A stretch of 64,000 bases of DNA, taken from NCBI GenBank assembly GCA_040285825.1, contig JAUPSS010000012.1:372001-436000 (forward strand), read 5' to 3'. The notes beneath the pieces were generated by a model, which was not told the origin of the DNA, did no database searches, and saw only the letters and a list, made by a program, of their open reading frames with translations. The stretch is from Eukaryota sp. TZLM1-RC (lineage: Eukaryota > Protista > Metamonada: BaSk clade). Made by a program: the position numbers and the translations under genes. Shown here one piece after another: positions 1 to 44,815 of the stretch (position 1 is the first letter of the stretch; every line of letters begins with the position of its first letter).

Positions 1-438
1 TGTTGTCACTGTTGATGTTTGTAAAGACTCAGCAATTGACTTTGCTGAAAAGAGCAAAATCAAAAAGTACAATGAACCCTTATCTCAGCTAGGACGTGTT
101 GAGTATGTTAAGTATCAGTTGGTTCCATTTGCTGTTTCTCTTTTTGGTAACATTGGAATATCTGGCATTAAATTTCTTGAAGGTTTCAGAAGTTTAATAA
201 AAGAAAGAGCAGGAAAAGAATTGAACTTCAATTTCTGGCACAATAGAATTGTTTTCAGTATTCTTAAAGCAATTCCAGAAATGTTGACCAAAGCACTGTT
301 ACAATTAGAAATAGAGTATGAAAATCGCGCGCTTAAAAGATTTGATGATGTTGATGCGTGTATTGAGGATATTGAGTTCTAGTTTTTTGTTTAATGTTTT
401 GTTAGCGTTGAAAATAAATTTATACCAATCAAAAAAAA
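1..438 (+). mobile_element. 3' end of CRE-like non-LTR retrotransposon (RLE domain, 3'UTR, A-tail)
   Basis: ORF to 382 reads VVTVDVCKDS..KYNEPL..VPFAVSLFGNIG..FWHNRIVF, the C-terminal endonuclease tail shared by many copies in the window. A-run near 430. Confidence 0.85.
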
Positions 439-955: not shown

Positions 956-1894
956 TTAATCAGTTGACACAAATTTTTTCAATCTTTCACTGTGCAAATA
1001 AGGAGACTTGTAGTTTTGTTGTTCAACGTAACCAGAGTGATTAAAGAGCGAGTTACAGTTATAGTTACGTAAGCTCTCAAGACAAGAAAAAATAATTTGG
1101 GTAGCAGGCACGTCAGGATAAAGTTTAGCTTCGTTTCGAACTCGTCTTCTTAAGATAGAGAAAAAACTCTCGATAAGATTACATTCTGGGCAGTATGGGG
1201 GCAAAAGAATGTATTTAATACCGGTTTTACTTACAGCTGCAAAAATTTCAGGTGACCTATGAATTCGACAGCCATCTAATATCAGAACAGAGCGTGGACC
1301 TGGAAATCGATACGTTACACCATCTCTGATTAAGTCTTTTAAGAAGCCAACAAAATCTGATCTGCTGAAGTGACCTTCCTTCATATGTGAGATCACATAG
1401 CCAAACATGTTAATACAAACGACCAGTGATATTTGGCGTGCATTAATTTTTCCAGCTTTGGCATGAATAGGAACTTTCTTTTTAGAATATCCTTTGTTTC
1501 GATGAAAATGTTCGTTTCGAAAACTCAATTCATCAATAAATAGTAGTGAAGACTGAATAATAGATCCCACTTCTTTCAAAAGAAATGCGTCATAGTTACG
1601 ATGCAGACTCTCTTTACACTTGTAGAGGACTGTTGATGCAACTTTATTTGAATATCCTGAATCAACAAGAATTCTTCGGATTGTTGACACTGAAGAAGCG
1701 ATACCAAACATATTCCTACAGAGAGTCTCCATTTCATGTACAAACATAAACGGATCGTTATCAACTATCTTCAACAAAATGTCAACTTCTGTGCATTTGA
1801 ACTTTTTTGACCGTTTACGTTTGTGTGTACCCCATTTAGAGGCGTCAAAGGAGTGTTTTAACCATCGAGATATCGTTGATTGTGATATAATCAA
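956..1894 (-). mobile_element. IS630/Tc1-mariner transposase (DD34E), N-terminus apparently missing
   Basis: HTH-like ISQSTISRWLK and SVSTIRRIL. Catalytic motifs LFIDE, LILDGCRIH and LPPYCPECNLIE, with 34 residues between D and E. No ATG start and no TIRs found. Confidence 0.9.
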
Positions 1895-1899
1895 CTAAA

Positions 1900-3650
1900 T
1901 TCCACAAGTCAACTCTATAAAAGTCAATTGTCAAAAAGAACTTGCCGAAGTTTGGCAACCACAAAGTCTGAGAACTCTATCAAAGTTGCTGAATTGGCAG
2001 CAAACGCAGATAATTCGGTGTTTGCGTCTTCAATTGTCATTTCGTTAGACTCTATCAATTGGTTCCTGTCGTAACCTACCTCAGTATATTTTGTAGCCCA
2101 TCGTTTTTATTTTTCATTCATGCTACTTTTCAAAGAACAGGACATCTGAGTCATTCTCAACCATTTGTACTTCTTGTCTTGATTCATCACCCGACTATTT
2201 CTTTGCTGTTCAATTTCATGCTGAGGAACCATGGCTAGTTCTTGATCAGTCTTTTTACTCCCAAAATACAATAAATCACATTTTCCAGGATCACAAACAA
2301 CAATTCGTTTGTCTTGAAATGTATCAACACCAACATCATCAATATATAATCCGAAATACTGGCCTTGTTTCCTGGCTCACATTTCTGACCTCGTAAATGC
2401 TGACGAACAAATTCTACTGTAATATTAAACATATCTGTGTGGATAATGTTGTTGAATTTATAGCCTTTCTGTTTGAACATTGGTTGGTTTAAATCGAGAA
2501 TATTAGACCAAAAGTCAAATTGCTGAGGTGGTTTGAATTTCGTAATTTGGGGTAGTGTATTCGACATTTGTCATCTCTGATCAGGCAACAAATCGTCCGT
2601 CAATGTTTGTCTAATAATTGTCCATATTCTTCTTGTATCAATAAAAAATATCCAGGGCCTACAGTGGTTGAAACAGGAGAAATATGATAAGGTTTTTTCT
2701 CTACTGGAGATATATTGGGCAATTGTAATTGCTGTGTTTTAGGAATATTTGAGGATCTTTTTCAACAGCGTCTACAACAAAATGTATATCCACTGGAAAT
2801 ATGTTGTCAACTAAATTCTCGTCAGTGACCAAATTCAATCAATAATTTGACAAGTGAATGGCTCAATAGGACTTTCAAATATGTCTGTAAGTTCATTATT
2901 TCTCATATCATGTTGTTCAAATAAATCGAAACAATCGTCATTCAGAAGGTCTGAAATATTTTCTGGATGATGAAACAAAGAACTCAAGCAATCTCTATCA
3001 TCAATTAAAAATAAGTAATTGAATTGACGAAGTCTAAATCTAAATAGTGAAATAATTGTAGATAATGGCGTTGAGTATCCACCCAGCTTGTGCATTTCCG
3101 ATAACACATATTCCACAACTACTTTGTCAAAGTCAACATTACAAAATTGATTAATATGTTTTTCATAATACAGTTTCAAATTATTCAACATTGGCAAATA
3201 TTACTGCGGCCATATACTGAGGTGGTCTACTGAAGCCATCAGTTGGAAATCGTGGAAAAAACTCCGGCCTTCATTTCAAATGGTCTACATAACCTATAGT
3301 TTTGTTCAACTTTTGTTGTTCAAAGGTAGTCGATGATCCATAATCTCCTTCACCATAAACAAAGTTTTCAAAGTCCTTTGGAAATGCACTTTTTCGTTTC
3401 ACCATTTCTTGTCCATAATACCCAGTTGAAATATAACGAGTTCTGGCCATTAATGATTCATTTAATTGGGCAGATATTCGTGGTGGTATAAAACTACGTT
3501 CAGAACAAGACTGTAAATACAGCTTTAAGCAACAAGTTGTATGAATACGTAACTGTTGAAATTTTACCACAGTTCCTTCAATTTGAGTATCGCGTTTGAA
3601 CGTTTAACCATTGAGTTGACGGTCGCTCGAATGGTTTTATAAGATGATCA
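1900..3650 (-). pseudogene. Fanzor1 (TnpB-like RNA-guided nuclease), N-terminal two-thirds, frameshifted
   Basis: Colinear Fanzor1-like blocks across frames: YKTIRATVNSMVK..VVKFQQLRIHTTCCLKLYL; YMAAVIFANVE/NNLKLYYEKHINQFCNV; DPQIFLKH; SPVSTTVGPGYF/IDTRR; FWSNILDLNQPMFKQKGYKFNNIIHTDMFNITVEF; RuvC-I RIVVCDPGKCDLLYF (D at 2290-2292); NTELSAFAANSATLIEFSDFVVAK. Ends before RuvC-II. Confidence 0.85.
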
Positions 3651-4508
3651 AATCAATTTGCCTTTCTGAAACAGCACGAAAAGTTTCAGACAAAGGATAC
3701 AATCATGAAGCCCATATTGAATCGAATTTTGTATTAGAGGAGAAATAGCTAAACAATCAATTGGCAAAATATGGTAAAATTCCTGATAAAGTTTGGTTTT
3801 CTTTGCATTTATCATTTTATATGCCAAATTACCTAATCCATGTCCGTAGAATATTTTAATAGTTTTTTGGCAAATAACAAAGTATCTAAAAGGAAAAAGC
3901 CGTTGCTGATTATCAATAAGGCGTTTTCGTCAGAGAATATTTCTGCCTGAACATTCATATCAATGTCTGGTAATCTGATTTGAGGACTCATTCTCAATAT
4001 AAGTGAATATTTACTCTCCAAAAAGTAATTATGGCGATCAAACTTACCAATAATAATCAAAAATACACTTTTTGATCTGAAATACACTCACCCATTTGCT
4101 CATCAGTTTTCTTTTTCAAAAGATTTGAACCTTCTTTTCTCTTTTTGTTGATAATATTGGCAATAGGGATAAATTGGCCATCATGATTTTGGTAAAGATG
4201 CCATCCTGATAGGTTTCAAGTTTAAAGGACTCAACAGTGGGAAATTTTGATTTGGGGTAATTGATGTGAATTGAAGCAATGAATCAGGCTTGAAGCCACT
4301 AGGACCTGGCTCAATTTTTTGGACCATACTCGGTTTCAATGGTTTTTTGTCGAAATCTTCTTGTTCTCGATATTCAACATTATTTTCAACACAAATTTCT
4401 CGGCTCAGTGATTTTTGTTGTTTGTTTCGCTTACGCTTTGATGTTTGTTGGTCAAAAATCGCTTTTCTTTTTATTTTTGATGGAGGAGTTGATTTAAAAA
4501 TGGATGTT
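3651..4508 (-). pseudogene. Degenerate N-terminal extension upstream of the Fanzor (basic segment plus possible DEDDh exonuclease remnant)
   Basis: 4508-4280 reads SIFKSTPPSKIKRKAIFDQQTSKRKRNK. 3850-3650 is in frame with the Fanzor core apart from one TGA (HGLGNLAYKM..LHDCILCLKLF..LI*SSYKT). LLDTLLFAKKL lies just upstream in another frame. Confidence 0.45.
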
Positions 4509-7500
4509 TGATGCCGTCTGTGTCATATGATAACAAAGAGTAAGGATAAATTTTTTAGAATTTCACCGGCCCTTATAAAGGCCATCACTAGTGAACTATA
4601 CTATATAAATACAAATGTACTAGACTAATTGTCCACAGTATAACACTACCTTTTCCCTCTCTTAGATCTCGAACGAGAGCTACGAGTACTGATTGCGGGG
4701 GAATTAGTCTTAGGTTTGGAATTAGAAGATGCCTTCCGTTTCCTGGTAGTGCGAGGGCTAATAGAGCGCAAATATGTTTGATATTCCCCAGTGCTTTTGA
4801 CGTCAGCAACTGGGACAGACGAAGTCTCGCCGTCATACCAAACTGCGGTACAATAAGGAACTTTATTATTGTTCGAATCTACGTAATCAAAGTGATCTAT
4901 AATTTTAACGATTACAGATTCTTCCATATCGCCAGCAGCAATATTCTTATGCCAATCAAGATTTTCTTTAGGGAAGTCTGAAAGGTATAATTTACAATGT
5001 TTTATACTAGCTGTAGATAACGAGCCAGTGACTAAGTTCTTGAGCAATAAGCTTTTATTGGATTTTACTTCTTCAATGAGAAAAGGGCCAGCGTAGCAAC
5101 CATGGAATTTACCATTAGTTTTTAATCGCAAAACCAAGTCACCTTTATTAAAAGGGTTCCTATGTTTGTTAACTTCAGGCAGTTGTTGAGCTTGCCTGAG
5201 CTCTGCCTCTTCTCTCTTCTTTGAAATCCTTTCAAGTTTTGCTTCGAGATCTTTAACAAAGGGAATATTAACATTAGCTGATTTTATTAGTTCAATCATA
5301 TTATTAGGATCAGCTCTAGGGCTGTGGTAGCTACCAAACATTAAATTGTAGGGCGAATGACCAGTAACTCTACTAATAGTTGAATTGATTTGAAGTTGTA
5401 CAATTGGGATGTATTCACTCCAATTGCTGTAATCGCCAGAGTCCACCAAAATCTTTCTTAGACTTTGACTCTGTGTCGTCTTTTTACTAAACCATTGCTT
5501 TGTGAAAAGCTAGTTAGTGAACGACTTACTTCAATGTTTAATAAATCGCATAACTTTTTGAAAATGGCATTTGCAAATTCAATACCATTGTCATTTTAAA
5601 TCAACAGTGGGAACTGCATTCAATTCCTTTACAGGGCAAATGATCGTATACCTAATGAATGAATCTACAAAAACTATTAAATATTTGAATCCATTATCAT
5701 CTTGATGTAATGGTCCAATAGTGTCTGCATTTAATCGTGCAAAAGGTCGATCAGCCCAAAGAGAGCCAGATGATTCAATGATATTTTTAGGTACATGTGC
5801 CGTCTTTTGACATGCTGGGCATCTCTTAATATGATTAATCATGTTTTTGCGCATGTCGGGCCAAAAGTAATCACTATTGAGTAATTTCTTTACGCTAGCC
5901 GTCACACTAGGATGGCCAACATTTGCATGTCCATGAATGAAAGTTAAGGTCTGCTTCTTTAAACTATCTGGGATAACAATCTTCCCACGGTTGTTGGTAT
6001 ACAATCGAATATTTGAATTATATTTGTAATCTTTATAATAATCTGGGTTTGAATCAACATCTATAAGTTATTCTTGCCTAATCTTTGAGATCCATGTGTC
6101 AAATAAATGAAATTTAATATCCTCAACTGCTTCTTTTAAAGCAGGTAAGCTATTGATCGTGGGTAGCTCAATTGTGGACGGTTGAGTAATATCATCCCTT
6201 AACAAATTCACTCTAGTTAATGAATTTAAATAGGGTAATTGTTCTTCAACTCTGTGAGGTGCCAAGTTTCTCACTTGTTGAACTCGAGGAGTTTTGGGTT
6301 TAGTATCAACCAATCTAGACAACATGTCTGCCCAATAATTCTCCTCGCCTGCAGTGTGGACTACATCAAAATTGAATTCTGACAATATTGGTAGCCACCT
6401 CTTCACAATTCTGTTCTTTTCAGGAGCTGATATAAAGTATGCTAAATTTCTATGGTCAGTGAATATAGTTAATTTCCTCGAAATTAAATAATTTTCTAAA
6501 CTACTGTCAGTGAGAATTAGTAAAATTGCATACAACTCTTGCTGAAGTACAGACCAATTCTTCTGTGCAGTTGATAATAATCTGCTAAAAAAGGCAATAG
6601 GTACAACCTTTCTCTTAATTAGCGGTGTCGTAGGATCTTTAGGTGGGTTAGCTCCTTGCCATATTACTCCACCTACAGCCACATCGGACGCGTCAGCACT
6701 AATAAAAATATGCTTGTCTTCTGAGGGCAATTCAAGAGGGATATTTGTTTTAATAAGATTTATAATCTTATCAAAAGCCTCGTCATGATCAGGAGTCCAC
6801 TTGATTTTTGACGGTTTGTTTCTGGTTAATTTGTTGATTGGTTCTATCAAATCAAAGAAATTCGGCAGTTTCGGCAACCATTCACGTATTTAATTGATCG
6901 AACCTACAAAACTCCTTACTTCAGCTAATGTCCTGGGTGTGGGTAGGATGATCAGTTTCTCTATCCTAGATTCATCTCCGTAACGGGTTTTGTTTACAAA
7001 AATTGTACCTAGAATTTTTTTTCATGTTTGCAAGTGGTAAAGCTTCAGTTGGGTAGGTCCACGTTAATTCTAAAACGTTTTGTGCATTCTAGGCCCATAC
7101 CTACTCTGGATAGAAATTCATCCAAGGTTGAAGCTACTAATATAATATTATCGATATATATATATTACCGTTCGTGATGTGACATATGAGATGTTCAAGT
7201 GTTACAATTTTAGTTGCAAAGTAGAACCTTTGTTGAAGCATTATAGTGATGATAATCTTTTTAATTCACGTCGAGGTGATTTAATTGCTCCTTTTGTGGA
7301 TTCCTCTCAAGTTGTTGTTGATTTCACTACAGTTGATCCCTTTGCTTTTGTTTATCGCGATGATGTTTTACTTAGTACTAATGGTCATTTAAACAAGGCT
7401 GAAGATCGTAAGAGAGATAAATATACTGAGATATTAAATGATTTGAATAACCTTTATTCGAAGTTTTCGTTTGTTCCTTTTGCCTTTTCGATTTTTGGCA

Positions 7501-10500
7501 ACATTGGACAATCCGCCTTGAATTTCATCAATGATTTTGGTAATTTATGTCGTTCAAGTGGTAAGAATTTTGCAGAGAATTTATGGAAAAATCGTATCAT
7601 TTTCGCTTTGTACAGAAGTGTTCCCAAGTACTTGAGTTTAATGATGTCTAAACTTTATAAGGATTCATCAAGAGTTGGCGTGGAGAATTTCGTTTCTTAT
7701 GTGTTTTAGTTTGTTTTGTTTTTATTTGATTCTTTATATAAATGGTTTGATTTAATAAATAAATTATCGATATATATATATAAATAAATACACCTTCGGA
7801 ATCAAACATTTCCATCATCATGTTTTGGAAGACTGCAGGAAAGTTCTTCAAACCAAAACAAGCCCTTTTTAAACTGATCGACATCACGGGAATTGATACG
7901 GTAGATTTATCAATGTCCTCTTCTGCAATTTTGAGCTGCCAAAATGCCTGAGGTAAATCTAGAGTTGCTATATAGTAAGCTTTACTTAGAAACTCTAAAA
8001 TGTCGCTAATCCTGAGCAAATTTGCCTCTACAGGTTTAGTTAAATCATTTACTCCACCAATACCATTAAAATCGCCAGTTAATCGTGGTTTCCTGTGATC
8101 AGGGTAAATCACAAGACAGATGGAACTACTGAATTGAAACTTTGCGGGCACAGCAAATCCATTACGGATCAATTCGTTAAAATTTCCTCGGCTACCCGTT
8201 GTTTTCCTGGGTTTAATCTTCGAGGTTTCCTTTTGACGATCTTACTTTCGTCGTAAAATGGAATGGTCATCGGCTGACAATCTATTCCATCCGGGTGAGG
8301 TAGCCCACTGCACACATCTCTGTATTCTTCTAGTAGCAAGACTAGGCGTTCCTCGTCCCTAATGTCATCCAGGCATATTCTACAGCCCAACTCATCTAAA
8401 AAATGTTTGAATGTGGAGTGTCCAATACTATTACCTAATATAGTTTTATTCTGTATTAAATCAATACAATTAACAGGTTGACAGGTTCTGTTATCAAACT
8501 CACATTCTGCATTCAAGATGGTGCGATGTTCGCGGTCTAAACTAATATTAATACCGTGCTCCATGCGCAGCCCCAAGGTTTGTAAAAGGTCTCTTCCAAT
8601 CAAAAAATTATTGGTACCAGGTATGATCTGGAACTCGATCCTTAAATACACGTGAGTGGCCAAGCTACCCACATTGAGAGCAAGAACACCATTCGCACTT
8701 CCTAGGGTCGTGGAGGGATTACCATTTGCTGATAGGTATTCGACGGTTTTATTCTCGTCAATTGTCATTCGACATTTTAAGGCTAGATCCATCGATAATG
8801 CTGAGAATGCAGCTCCACTATCGATTTCGCCTTGTACTTCCACGTTATTTATTGAGCAGGTCAACAAGAGTTCCCTGTTAGAACTTACTTGGTCTCCTGT
8901 CACCCTGGATAGTCTAACACTGTGGATAGAACCCACAGGATTGGATGACTCTCTAAATCTTTTTAAAGGCTTTAGATGTTTATAATTCGAGTCAATTTTG
9001 CTCATTTTATTGATAGAACTACGTTACCACGTTTACTACCATCTCCTCCTCTTCGTTTCTTACTTCCAGGTCTGCCAACGACGGAGAAGAACTTTTCTTC
9101 AGCATGTTTATCTGTGTTACAGATGCCACACCATTGCCCAGATGGGGTTTGCTTGGGGTGATGTTTACCTCTACCGCCACCTCTAGATCCTCTAAGATGA
9201 TCTCTGGAGGGACGTCTTGACTGGCTAGGTCCTCTGAACGAAGGGTTGTTCCCAAATAATATTTTAACATTGGACAGTTCCAAATTTTGGTATTCTGTCA
9301 TCTTCTGAATAAAGGCTTGCCCTAAATCGTAGATCGCATCGCTAAGTTTCCTAACATTTGCTTTCCTGGAGGAAATTCGTCAATCCAAATTGCATAGGTA
9401 TTGACTAATTGGTTGTTAGTCTTCTTATTAATCTCCTGTAGAATCAATCTAGCAGGGTAAACAACTGAGGGCTGCCCATCGGTTCCCGGCATAGCGGTTG
9501 ACCGTCTTATGATATAAACAAATTGTTGGATGAAAGTGTTCTAAATTACCTCCACAGGTTTGCGACTAATCTCGGGTGGTTTTGTGGCTGATATAGCAGC
9601 ATGAACTTCAGAAATTCTTCTGTATTGGGTGCTAAATAGCAAAAATTCCCAAATCTCGTGGTCGGTTGCATTCCTATCTAAAGGTTCTTTGCGACCTCCA
9701 AGACGAGTTTTCCATTGGTCCATAACTGTGCCCTCGATCATTTCGCTCAAATATAGGGGGTAGATTTCATAAAACATCGAACGTACGAAATCAAATTCGT
9801 GGATTGGCTCCCCATATTTGGTGATCGGCTGAAAAGGTCTCATAGGTCCATCTCGGTCCCTTTTGGTTTTATCCCAATTCGCAAAATTTACCACAAAATC
9901 GAAAACTTTCTTGGAATCAAAACCATCATCCAATTTCTTTAGTTGTCTTTTCCTTTCTTCTATTATCTTGATGAGCTTTTCTTCATCAGTGAATGGTTTG
10001 TTGTACACCAGAGGAAAGAACCAAAGGGTCTCATGGTATGTTAGTTGAAGGACTACTAGCTACCAAGGGAATAGTGGGAGGGACAGGACTACTTTGTCCA
10101 GAAGCTTGTGCAGATGATCGTCTTCTTCTTAGATACGGTGCTACTGAAGGAGTCGAGAATAATAATTGATTTGCTTCTTCAGATGGTAGCATCTCGCTCA
10201 AGTCTAGGATTTGGCGATGTTTGGGTGGATCATCCTGCTCAGGCAACTTCTGAGTATCAGGTTTAAAAGTACCCCAATCTGGAGCATTTTTGGAACCTTG
10301 AGGGATTCCATCCACATCATGTTTATAAGGGAGGCAACTACTTTTGACCAGGATATTTTCAAAAACTCTCTGATCTGGGTAGCTGTCAACCCAAGCTTTG
10401 AGCTTAACTATCCAAGGATCTGGATAAACCAGTTTTATATTATTAGGTCCTACCCGTTGTTCAACTAATTCAATGATCTTGGTTCCCTTTGTTCTCACAA

Positions 10501-11763
10501 AGGTTTCCTTGCGGTGAAATTGAATTGTATCTCCGCGATCAGCAACGAACATACTACCTAATAGCGTTAACACATCCGTCATTCTATCACTTGGATGAAT
10601 GTTTTCAACAAGGAAGTGTCTTACTGTTCCTCTCATCATACGGCCTGCATGGTGATGAGGGTACATTTTGGCAATCCAAAACATACGATCATTTTCCAAC
10701 TCGTTGCCTCCGGAATACTGGTTCCTAGCACGGATCCGTTGATCAGGAATGGCATCTCTGTGCCAAAACTGTGGTTTTGGGGTAGCAGCCTGGTATTTCG
10801 AACGTGGGTTGTCGAAGCAACAATTCTCAGGATCTTCTGCTACATACTGGACTACACTCTCAGCACATTGATCGAGCCTAGTTGACATATCCGGGCCTTG
10901 ATCTTGTTCTTGGTGAACTACATCGTCCATGGTATAACCACGCGAGCTACCAAAGAGGAGGGGCCATCTTTTCTTTAGAAATTCTTCCCTGTCACCTACG
11001 TAACTGGGGTCCGAGACAATATTTGCCTCTGTCTCAATGGCCTTGACGAATTCGTCATCACTCAAATCCCTAATATCATCGGGTGAAGAAGCTCGAATAT
11101 TTAGGAGGAACTCCTGAACGAAAAGGGTTACCTTCTCTTTTAAATGTTGACGGTACCACTTTTGAGAGGTGCGGTATTCCGTATCTGTCCAATCTGCAGA
11201 AAAGGATGGGCGTCTGGGTGGTTCATCACCATTCCGTCACCGTCACCGTCGTTAGGGTTGTCCTCGCCCAGCTGAGATGTATCCGTAGTAACTGGCTGAT
11301 CTTCTTCTTCTTTAGGTTTACCAGTATCAGAAAGAGGAGGGTTTGGATTCGAGGAACCCGTGCCTTCCCCATCAACTGGCTTGACGAAAAGCTTAGTGTT
11401 GGTTCCTTCAACCGGTACAAGCTTTGCTCCATTAGGAAGCGTGTTATTGGGGTCTTACCCGGGGAAAAGGTTCCCATGGTTACTCTCATTTTGAGGGGAC
11501 GCTCTCTTCCTCAGGGAGGTTACTCACCGTGGGTGGTGACGGATTGTTCTCCTTCAAAGAAGGGACATTACTCTTCCTCAGAGAGGAAGGAGAGTTATCA
11601 TTGTGGCCTTTCGGGCCATTAATTAATGATGCCGTCTGTGTCATATGATAACAAAGAGTAAGGATAAATTTATTAGAATTTCTCCGTCCCTTATAAAGGC
11701 CATCACTAGTGAACTACACTATATAAATACAAATGTACTAGACTAATTGTCCACAGTACAACA
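4509..11763 (-). mobile_element. Full-length, decayed Ty3/Gypsy chromodomain LTR retrotransposon
   Basis: 137-bp LTRs at 4509-4645 and 11627-11763 (TG..CA, 5 differences); 4-bp TSD tgtt/tctt; PPT AGAGAGGGAAAAGGTAG. Domain order: gag knuckle (CGICNTDKH), protease (IDSGA), RT, RNase H (ADASD..TDHRNL), integrase (HHCC, ADTIGP, GPF), chromodomain. Confidence 0.95.
7166..7762 (+). mobile_element. 5'-truncated CRE-like non-LTR copy nested in the Gypsy RT
   Basis: RLE motifs RRGDLI..VVVDFT..AEDRKRDKY. 19-bp TSD attatcgatatatatatat at 7147-7165 and 7763-7781. Confidence 0.9.
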
Positions 11764-12174
11764 TCTTCTCTTTCTGGGACCAGGATTTGCTTCAACATCT
11801 CCAATTATTGTTAGAACAACAGTAAATGGGTTTGTTGGTACAAGATTTTGGCAGCTACTGGATTGAAATGGTGAATTATAAACATAATCATCAAACTCAA
11901 CATTATTAAAATAGCAACATCCCATATCTACAGTACAAGTACCTAACCACAACAGACAACAAACTCAATAACATTAAGATAACAATTTAAAACAAAAAAT
12001 AAACAAACAAACATCCATATCTAAGGGGATTAGCACCATAACTGATTCAGCACCAATATCATGACTCACATGATTACGGAAAACAGTACTCTGCTGTTCT
12101 GTTAAGAACAGGTTAAAGGAGGAGGTGGGAACCGGGTCCGTAACCTCGTCATCCTTTTTCTCCTCTCGATGCAT
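11764..12174 (-). pseudogene. Leader ORF ending in a 2A (StopGo) motif; 5' part of the gene interrupted by the Gypsy
   Basis: VVLTIIGDVEANPGP, motif at 11776-11802. Continues in frame into 4508 and below once the Gypsy and one TSD copy are removed. A possible 66-nt intron (12008-11943) would link it to ATG 12174. Confidence 0.6.
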
Positions 12175-15039: not shown

Positions 15040-15624
15040 ATGACAGTGTCTCCTAATGAAGCACTGATCCGTAAACGGAGGCGGCGATCATCTCCTAAAA
15101 TCTTTACTGGTGACCACGTAGACGTTTCCAATATACCTTCCTTTCGCAAGCTTATGCACAAGTTTGGAGACTCTCTTGTTCTTTTCTCATCCAACTGTCA
15201 CAAAGTCAACAAGAGAAACAAGACACAGGAACGTATAGTCGTAGTAACAGATCAGGCTGTCTACAATCTCATCCCAAGATCATACAAATGCAAGAGAAGA
15301 ATACCGTTATCAGACCTGACTGGAGTTTCACTCTCCACCCTGCCCGATAACTTCATTTCACTGCACTGTGTAGACTATGACTACCTCTTCATGTTGTCCC
15401 GCAAGACTGAGTTTGTCCACGTTATCCTCTCGAACGCCGTCACCCTTCCATCCAGTTTTAAGGTCAACCTCAACGACACCTTCATATACCGGGCTGATAA
15501 GACGAATCTGTTGAGAGAAGTGGTGTTTGAACCCGTGGAGACTGAGAATGGGAATGGGGTATCAACTCTTATTTTTACTGTTGCTGGAGTTCCAAATGCT
15601 GAAGAAGGGGGTGATTCTGAGTGA
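15040..15624 (+). CDS. Stand-alone myosin-I tail (TH1, PH-like) domain protein
   Basis: RRRSS..FTGDHV, KVNKRNKTQERIVVVTDQAVYNL, KRRIPLSDLTGVSLSTLPDNF and DYLF..KTEF are TH1 motifs. No motor domain or upstream exon seen. Confidence 0.8.
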   Translation: MTVSPNEALIRKRRRRSSPKIFTGDHVDVSNIPSFRKLMHKFGDSLVLFSSNCHKVNKRNKTQERIVVVTDQAVYNLIPRSYKCKRRIPLSDLTGVSLSTLPDNFISLHCVDYDYLFMLSRKTEFVHVILSNAVTLPSSFKVNLNDTFIYRADKTNLLREVVFEPVETENGNGVSTLIFTVAGVPNAEEGGDSE

Positions 15625-43984: not shown

Positions 43985-44815
43985 TGTTTATTCTACAAAA
44001 CAACAAACTAAAACACATAAGAAACAAAATTCTCCACGCCAACTCTTGATGAATCCTTATGCAGCTTGGACATCATTAAATTGAAATATTTGGGAACACT
44101 TCTGTACAAAGGAAAAATGATACGATTCTTCCAAAGATTCCCTGCAAAATTCTTACCACTTGAACGACATAAATTATCAAAATCATTGAGAAAATTCAAG
44201 GCAGACTGTCCAATGTGTGTTTTCAAAGTGTACAATGAATTAAACAGATTATTATCGCTATGATGCTTCAACAACGGTGCTACTTTGCAACTAAAATTGT
44301 AACACTTAAACATCTCATATGTCACATCAGGAACGGCATTTTGAAGAACTGACCGATATTGAAGAAATTTCTTACAACTTACATTATGACGGAAATTTAC
44401 AGTCAGTTTTTCGTTACAAATACAAACAGAATTATTCTAAAGACCACTTGGATACAGCCCTAATCTCAAACGCATGTTTTGTTTCCAAGCTTCATTTGTT
44501 AAGTGAAGACCAAATGGCCGTGGTTACTGAGATATTAAATTAGTGCAATTCTTGATGTCTGATAAAAGGGCAGCAAAGACGGGATCATTAATCTTTGTCT
44601 GACCAAGACGTTGAGAAAAATTCAGGTCTTCAAAACCAATTAAAACAGACTTCCGTAATTTCACAACAGCAAGATGAAGATTAGACAAAGATCTCGAAGG
44701 TACAGAAGGCAAACCTGAAGGAAAACACTTATTCCACATATCACTAGGTAGTTCCTGTACAATGTTCTGGAGTAAAATTAATAAAGGATGTGATTCATTC
44801 AAAGGAACTTGATCA
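43985..44815 (-). mobile_element. CRE-like 3' fragment (family of 7166 and 34832), with internal deletion
   Basis: Translation nearly identical to 7179..7709. Confidence 0.85.

Follow-up and report, generated by a model that had tools for sequence, protein, structure and literature searches.

Did a 2A (StopGo) sequence once stand at the head of a Fanzor1 gene? Fanzor1 proteins are compact RNA-guided nucleases found on eukaryotic transposons, and 2A sequences are known from RNA viruses, from retrotransposons without long terminal repeats (non-LTR) and from a few animal genes. The question is raised by contig JAUPSS010000012.1 of assembly GCA_040285825.1, of which a stretch of 64,000 nucleotides (positions 372,001 to 436,000, hereafter the window) was analysed. 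An earlier note on this stretch had proposed that a short open reading frame (ORF) ending in a 2A motif and a frameshifted Fanzor1 remnant, now separated by a Gypsy element, were parts of one gene. The assembly, in which the paralogues described below were also found, comes from Skoliomonas litria (type isolate TZLM1-RC), an anaerobic metamonad that is free-living and haloalkaliphilic (PMC11603281).

We find that positions 12335-1900 of the minus strand hold a copy, now dead, of a mobile-element gene that Skoliomonas litria has in multiple copies. The family to which it belongs is represented in TZLM1-RC by at least 61 annotated protein fragments; eleven copies were read, namely ten paralogous copies from nine loci and the window copy, and no further copy was found within the window. 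In the family a Cys-rich leader is followed by a 2A motif, a basic stretch that resembles a nuclear localization signal (NLS), a PolB-type 3'-5' exonuclease domain and a Fanzor1 body. What was observed is the order of these modules, the one frame that they ancestrally shared, and the identification of the body as Fanzor1 and of the exonuclease domain as PolB-type; the union of 2A leader, basic N-terminus and Fanzor1 body in one ancestral reading frame of a repeated element is supported by four copies. We consider it likely that the ancestor was a gene with one ORF composed in this way, on which ribosomes would have skipped at the 2A motif, and of which the window retains a dead copy. That copy is a fossil, and the interest rests with the family. 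Its parts, all on the minus strand, are listed here from the 5' end of the gene, followed by two features read in several copies:

12335-12175, 5' region of the repeated element (limit about 12335), common to L004 8097-8248 (89%) and L004 19730-19621 (81%)
12174-11926, upstream leader, with an ATG at 12174; its Cys-rich repeat unit is degenerate and, in the window copy, broken
11925-11779, leader ORF of 49 codons, from its first ATG (MGCC...) to the Gly of NPG, with homologous leaders in L003, L007 and L001
between 11779 and 11778, predicted skip site, NPG/P of the 2A nonamer
11778-11764, first five codons (PRKRR) downstream of 2A, with the upstream target-duplication copy AAGA at 11767-11764
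11763-4509, Ty3/Gypsy LTR retrotransposon (7.25 kb) within the gene, recognized by LTRs, target duplication and domain order
4508-4505, downstream target-duplication copy AACA
4508-4184, basic, NLS-like N-terminal stretch of the downstream product, stop-free, colinear with L003 7333-7759 and L007 3800-4144
4173-3651, remnant of the PolB-type 3'-5' exonuclease domain, counterpart of L003:7763-8374 and L007:4148-4860
3603-2350, N-terminal (REC/WED-like) region of Fanzor, spread over several frames and interrupted by in-frame stops, with 61-75% identity to the open P0030, P0059 and P0014
2349-1900, RuvC-I motif (CDPGK, Asp codon 2292-2290) with the roughly 130 codons after it, recognized by phmmer, alignment A2 and a PDB profile
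L007:3209-3790 (about five), window 12060-11926 (one) and L003:7040-7160 (one), leader repeat units
L001 about 10880, L003 about 10740, P0006-P0041, and P0052 and P0055 of TZLM3-RCL, instances of NRN at RuvC-III

The ORF at 11952-11746 terminates in ...VVLTIIGDVEANPGPRKRR and then runs into foreign sequence. Within it the nonamer GDVEANPGP (11802-11776) is directly followed by PRKRR, which ends at 11764. This motif lies far beyond chance: NPGP occurs only once in the six frames of the window, and D[VI]ExNPGP would be expected 3.7e-5 times per window of this composition, or 0.06 times per 100 Mb of six-frame translation. The foreign sequence is a Ty3/Gypsy retrotransposon, with LTRs of 137 nucleotides that are 96% identical (11763-11627 and 4645-4509), with protease, reverse transcriptase, RNase H and integrase (its zinc-finger domain) in the order typical of Ty3/Gypsy elements, and with a target duplication of 4 bp, AAGA (11767-11764) and AACA (4508-4505), that has one mismatch. 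It lies between the flanks ...AGAAAGAGAAGA, next to one LTR, and AACATCCATT, next to the other, five codons past the skip site, and beyond it the basic ORF picks up in frame at 4504. Removal of the Gypsy and of one duplicate yields PGPRKRR-S-IFKSTPPSKIKRK..., which keeps the frame and stays open for another 112 codons, to 4184, such that GDVEANPGP leads into PRKRRS... and a complete D[V/I]ExNPG/P is in frame with a downstream ORF.

This join, which had been predicted by excision of 4509-11763 and one duplicate in silico, is borne out by the paralogues L003 and L007, which carry exactly the predicted sequence. L003 is without the Gypsy and colinear with the window on both sides of the insertion (6995-7337 corresponds to window 12087 to 11763, and 7333-7928 to window 4508 to 3925). 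In both L003 and L007 the empty site reads ...AAGA-TCC..., and therefore the residue after PRKR, which had been left as either R or T, is Arg and not Thr. A look for sequencing runs turned up three DNA runs of one sample and no RNA run; the DNA reads yielded only short contigs of paralogous copies, none of them joining across the Gypsy site.

The reading frame continues well beyond this junction. L003 and L007 both have leader, 2A, basic stretch and the following domain of 200 residues in one frame, in which all stops are private (six in L003 and four in L007), and no stop common to several copies was found between the 2A motif and the body; the alternative that intact paralogues would show a conserved stop and a separate ATG there, named in advance as fatal to the proposal, is not what these copies, all of them broken, show. 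The NCBI gene model in L007 (312 amino acids) spans the 2A remnant uninterrupted. L001:9929-10940 is an internal-deletion copy: its 2A remnant and PRKRRS run straight on into the RuvC-I region within one open ORF, which GenBank lists as the hypothetical protein KAL0205218.1, and the copy keeps the entire C-terminal half in two open pieces. Stop-free pieces of different copies overlap from the leader to the final stop codon, and therefore each break in one copy is bridged by another. The ancestral ORF comprised about 1,100 codons (in L003 from the ATG at 7163 to the stop at 10817-10819, minus an insertion of 295 nucleotides). The same order and the same junctions are found at four independent loci on different contigs, with 81-88% DNA identity.

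Between 4519 and 1900 the frame of the window copy changes at least nine times and is interrupted by several in-frame stops. The frame changes are frameshifts rather than introns, since the corresponding stretches are single ORFs in P0005, P0014, P0030 and P0059 and paralogues cross every break in one ORF; the whole REC/WED-like region is read by P0005 in this way. Pairwise ratios of nonsynonymous to synonymous substitution rates (dN/dS) between copies are 0.17-0.50 for the REC region, 0.46 for RuvC and 0.45 for the exonuclease domain. They are 0.31-0.69 for the leader with 2A (54-62 codons only), and about 1 in two of the three comparisons of the basic stretch, with 0.55 in the third. These values suggest selection on master copies during part of the divergence, weakly so in the case of the leader.

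The Fanzor1 body was recognized through the paralogues. A phmmer search with an 89-residue piece of the window that contains the candidate RuvC-I motif retrieved five proteins (P0001-P0005), all encoded in GCA_040285825.1. Alignment A2, which extends from RuvC-I to the C-terminus and was built from pieces of paralogues and of the window, was then compared as a profile with PDB, where it matched only the Fanzor1 proteins of Parasitella parasitica (9cf0, E 2.1e-22) and Spizellomyces punctatus (8gkh, E 2.6e-12), which bears out the identity first proposed from the window. The alignment with the solved Fanzor1 structures takes in the RuvC-I DPG, the RuvC-II Glu, the zinc ribbon and the RuvC-III block. 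At RuvC-I, CDPGKCDLLY of the window aligns with MDPGRRDLLY of 9cf0, and in the paralogues LMINEAFTS.KCPVC...CHGLLAC..SC aligns with the RuvC-II Glu and zinc ribbon of 9cf0. The Pfam family Cas12f1-like_TNB gave weak matches (E 0.003-0.06) to five proteins at the same profile positions. Single pieces of the window were poor queries: Pfam found no Fanzor signal in ten of them, single-sequence PDB searches with two gave chance matches only, and a protein atlas search with one ended, with low recognition, in unnamed clusters.

As had been claimed, the strand runs through real frameshifts into a Fanzor1 sequence, but not into a complete core. Homology to L003 and to the rest of the family stops at 1900, about 130 codons past the RuvC-I Asp, against a fragment of a Tc1-like element. 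The window copy is cut off after RuvC-I, and therefore RuvC-II, the zinc ribbon and RuvC-III are absent there. This truncation had been overlooked in the earlier note, and so had the PolB-type exonuclease domain and a substitution at RuvC-III.

The basic stretch and the Fanzor1 body are separated by the exonuclease domain. L003:7763-8374 matches Pfam DNA_pol_B_exo1 with E 5.7e-9 and 36.2 bits, above the curated cut-off of 23, and the best PDB matches are all family-B polymerases, with weak E-values, at the ExoII region. ExoII (NxxxFD) and ExoIII (YxxxD) can be read in L003 and L007. In the window a deletion of about 200 nucleotides at about 3925-3904 removes ExoII, leaving no counterpart of L003 7929-8134; the remnant retains an ExoIII-like YxxxD and gives a weak hint of DNA_pol_A_exo1 (E 0.028). 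The first 40 residues of the product past 2A include three basic clusters, a composition that would be compatible with nuclear import.

Upstream of the 2A motif the leader is built of Cys-rich hydrophobic units in tandem, each of about 31-34 codons. It counts 49 residues in the window copy but, through expansion of the repeat, about 190 in L007, and two of the repeat offsets in L007, 93 and 102 nucleotides, preserve the reading frame. The stretch of L007 homologous to window 11926-12174 is open and consists of about five tandem units. In the window the upstream leader unit is out of frame from about 12011 to 11946; the ATG at 12174 shares its frame with the 2A ORF, with stops and two compensating frame changes in between. 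An intron linking this ATG to the leader is ruled out, as read from the sequence, both candidate acceptors yielding stops. The 5' boundary of the element at about 12335 is based on two copies only. Searches for proteins of similar length with the L003 leader, and likewise with the NLS-like piece, found nothing.

In each copy that has the motif, 2A directly precedes the NLS-like stretch. The nonamer is GDVEANPGP in the window, GNVEANPGP in L003, EDVEANSGP in L001 and GNVDANHGP in L007. The Ser of L001 and the His of L007 are each one nucleotide away from a Pro codon, and therefore NPGP is ancestral.

From this arrangement a course of expression may be envisaged. At NPG/P the ribosome would skip the Gly-Pro bond and free the short leader, and translation would proceed into a Pro-initiated exonuclease-Fanzor protein targeted to the nucleus. 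By analogy with other N-terminal 2A sequences, the leader may set the dose, the N-terminus or the destination of the enzyme. The window copy departed from the ancestral gene by the Gypsy insertion, by the loss of about 200 nucleotides of the exonuclease domain, by frame changes and stops, and by the cut-off after RuvC-I. The earlier note had envisaged an ancestral polyprotein from which 2A released a Pro-initiated, NLS-rich nuclease. The single frame and the basic N-terminus agree with it, but the term polyprotein is overstated, because what precedes 2A is a short leader of Cys-rich repeats with no recognisable second protein. The body does belong to the Fanzor1 family, but the family has Asn at the RuvC-III Asp position, which makes the word nuclease doubtful. 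The window copy is without most of the catalytic core.

Several points weigh against a 2A-headed exonuclease-Fanzor1 gene that worked in this manner. No intact copy was found among the eleven copies examined or among the annotated proteins, and ribosome skipping is predicted from the motif alone. The full 2A motif is retained in only one of four copies, that of the window; in two copies Asn replaces the Asp of D[VI]ExNPGP, and with D and N standing two against two the ancestral residue may have been either. Translation could have started at the ATG at 12174 or at that at 11925. Instead of the NRD of Fanzor1, with its catalytic Asp, nearly all copies have NRN at RuvC-III, with NRD, NRE or DRN in single copies. 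Since NRN is also found in two distant homologues from the sister isolate TZLM3-RCL, at 34-36% identity, it is a conserved substitution at the level of the family and not a sign of decay. The presumed ExoI, placed by eye, is D-R-H (V-H-H in L007) instead of DxE, with the Glu apparently replaced by His. With Asn at RuvC-III and His in the presumed ExoI, both enzymatic activities are therefore uncertain. Finally, the two TZLM3-RCL homologues have neither 2A nor an exonuclease module upstream, from which it follows that the N-terminal module is a recent, lineage-specific addition of unproven function.

How far, then, can the reading be pushed, and what could replace it? A bolder version, which we regard as a tentative possibility, is that Skoliomonas had, and in some copy beyond those read may still have, an active RNA-guided system of a novel type. 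In it a StopGo leader would release a nuclear exonuclease-Fanzor1 with Asn at RuvC-III; Fanzor would serve mainly to bind DNA under RNA guidance or to nick it, and processing of the target would fall to the fused PolB-type exonuclease. It is improbable that the 2A-like leader is instead a passenger captured from another element or a virus, a relic never used in translation, with the real start at an internal ATG. The absence of the module from the TZLM3-RCL homologues fits such a history, and so do the decay of the motif in three of the four copies and the variable tandem repeat of the leader, which is more like a minisatellite than like a protein. However, a passenger would hardly explain why the frame is continuous from leader to exonuclease in L003 and L007, why no stop is common to the copies, or why the repeat periods of 93 and 102 nucleotides preserve the frame; moreover, the leader with 2A has, on few codons, a dN/dS of less than 1, and the motif is placed immediately ahead of the NLS-like stretch wherever it occurs.

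Quite improbable is an ancestral gene that was a larger polyprotein, in which 2A separated two real proteins and of which the copies read here would be deletion derivatives. Internal-deletion derivatives are indeed plentiful in the family (L001, L004b and P0020), but no Ulp1-like sequence is present between leader and NLS-like stretch in the window copy, L003 or L007, and the insert of 1.46 kb in L001 is not a protease, a Ulp1-like protease having been looked for there and ruled out. That an unrelated 2A-bearing ORF came to lie upstream of a Fanzor remnant by an accident of nested insertions, as the dense nest of a Gypsy, a Tc1-like and three CRE-like fragments within 14 kb might suggest, is refuted by the recurrence of order and junctions at four independent loci on different contigs with 81-88% identity.

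The one-ORF gene with a 2A leader, an exonuclease domain and a Fanzor1 body belongs to an element whose 3' end could be traced in other copies. It ends about 50 nucleotides past the stop codon (L003:10820-10872, and at the same place in six other copies). The tail contains an 8-bp hairpin, GUUUUUGU paired with ACGAAAAU, which is kept in six of the seven copies and has one mismatched pair in L006. Where a Fanzor1 element would encode its omegaRNA, at the 3' end of ORF and element, the seven 3' ends fold into one shared structure, with almost no covariation (covariation term -0.62); the window copy is without this end. No terminal inverted repeats were found at the ends of the family element, and no hAT-like end was seen.

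The neighbourhood of the window copy is crowded with other elements, of which the following were recognized:

1899-959, minus strand, fragment of an unrelated Tc1/mariner-type DDE transposase that abuts the truncated Fanzor (Pfam DDE_3, E 1.6e-21)
13661-12890, minus strand; 119-382, plus strand; 7179-7709, plus strand; L004:10486-11983; and L004:20540-19820, minus strand, CRE-like fragments

The Tc1/mariner-type ORF (959-1894, minus strand) is open over 312 codons and has helix-turn-helix domains, with its N-terminal end missing. No terminal inverted repeats were found around the fragment, which is absent from all the paralogous loci and is not part of the family element. The CRE-like sequences are scattered 3' fragments of non-LTR retrotransposons, with a CCHC motif followed by a restriction-like endonuclease domain, which Pfam does not recognize. 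One is located in the reverse transcriptase of the Gypsy and one within a Fanzor copy in L004, and two Fanzor copies have one just upstream. Whether the fragment just upstream (in the window and in L004b) has a fixed link to the element was considered and ruled out, such a fragment being absent upstream of L007. The Gypsy reverse transcriptase is itself interrupted at about 7458-7722 by a nested repeat (L003 8782-9046 corresponds to window 7722-7458). This short repeat, 88-90% identical across copies, is present at window 7458-7722 in the Gypsy reverse transcriptase, at window 43997-44215, and at L003:8782-9046 in a Fanzor copy; at window 7458-7722 it overlaps the CRE-like ORF 7179-7709. At 15040-15624 of the plus strand there is a host ORF, 194 codons long, in which Pfam recognizes a myosin TH1 domain.

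Comparison with known systems places the Skoliomonas family among the Fanzor1 proteins (SpuFz1 8gkh, and 9cf0), with which it shares the DPG of RuvC-I, the Glu of RuvC-II, a CxxC...C..C zinc ribbon, the C-terminal RuvC-III block, a basic N-terminus and the character of a multi-copy, transposon-like family, its element ending some 50 nucleotides past the stop codon. Unlike them, it has a 2A leader, a PolB-type exonuclease domain inserted N-terminally, and NRN instead of NRD at RuvC-III; no transposase was found inside the unit, and no inverted repeats at its termini. What sets this Fanzor1 family apart are two N-terminal modules not reported before and a changed RuvC-III.

N-terminal 2A sequences have been described in non-LTR retrotransposons, namely the trypanosome elements L1Tc/ingi (Heras et al. 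2006) and animal APE-type elements (Odon et al. 2013), both cited in PMC12338488. The likeness consists in a short leader that ends in D[VI]ExNPGP ahead of a mobile-element protein, with an enzyme that would begin with Pro; on the other hand, the Skoliomonas enzyme combines a TnpB-family protein with an exonuclease and is not an endonuclease-reverse transcriptase, and its host is a metamonad. Animal NLR-like proteins have N-terminal 2A-like signal sequences (Roulston et al. 2016, PMC4981915), which resemble the present case in being short hydrophobic leaders that end in 2A and in allowing for two products with different destinations. In Skoliomonas, however, the downstream part carries an NLS-like stretch, and the leader is known as a sequence only and not as a signal sequence. 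The nonamer GDVEANPGP itself is catalogued among viral 2A-like sequences, from a fungal hypovirus and a picorna-like virus (PMC8623073). As in viral 2A peptides, those of picornaviruses, iflaviruses, dicistroviruses and others, a hydrophobic stretch is found just upstream; the viral ones lie between viral proteins, whereas that of Skoliomonas heads a cellular mobile-element gene.

No publication linking 2A or ribosomal skipping with Fanzor was found in a search that did not cover all journals, in agreement with the view that this architecture had not been described. Three large surveys of 2A peptides do not mention TnpB, nor Fanzor where that term was searched. Likewise, no description of a natural exonuclease-Fanzor fusion was found in those parts of the literature that could be covered, not all journals among them; the papers that mention both Fanzor and an exonuclease domain, an engineering study of SpuFz1 and a commentary among them, do not appear to describe one.

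The family would be the first case of a 2A sequence heading a TnpB-family gene and the first in which Fanzor is naturally fused to an exonuclease domain of the proofreading type, and it extends the use of 2A to a free-living metamonad. If a working version were recovered, it would become testable by what means the dose of a potentially genotoxic enzyme is set by a mobile element, whether a Fanzor with Asn at RuvC-III still cuts DNA, and whether a natural exonuclease fusion alters editing outcomes. An active exonuclease-Fanzor1, if this is true, would be a natural counterpart of the engineered exonuclease-Cas fusions.

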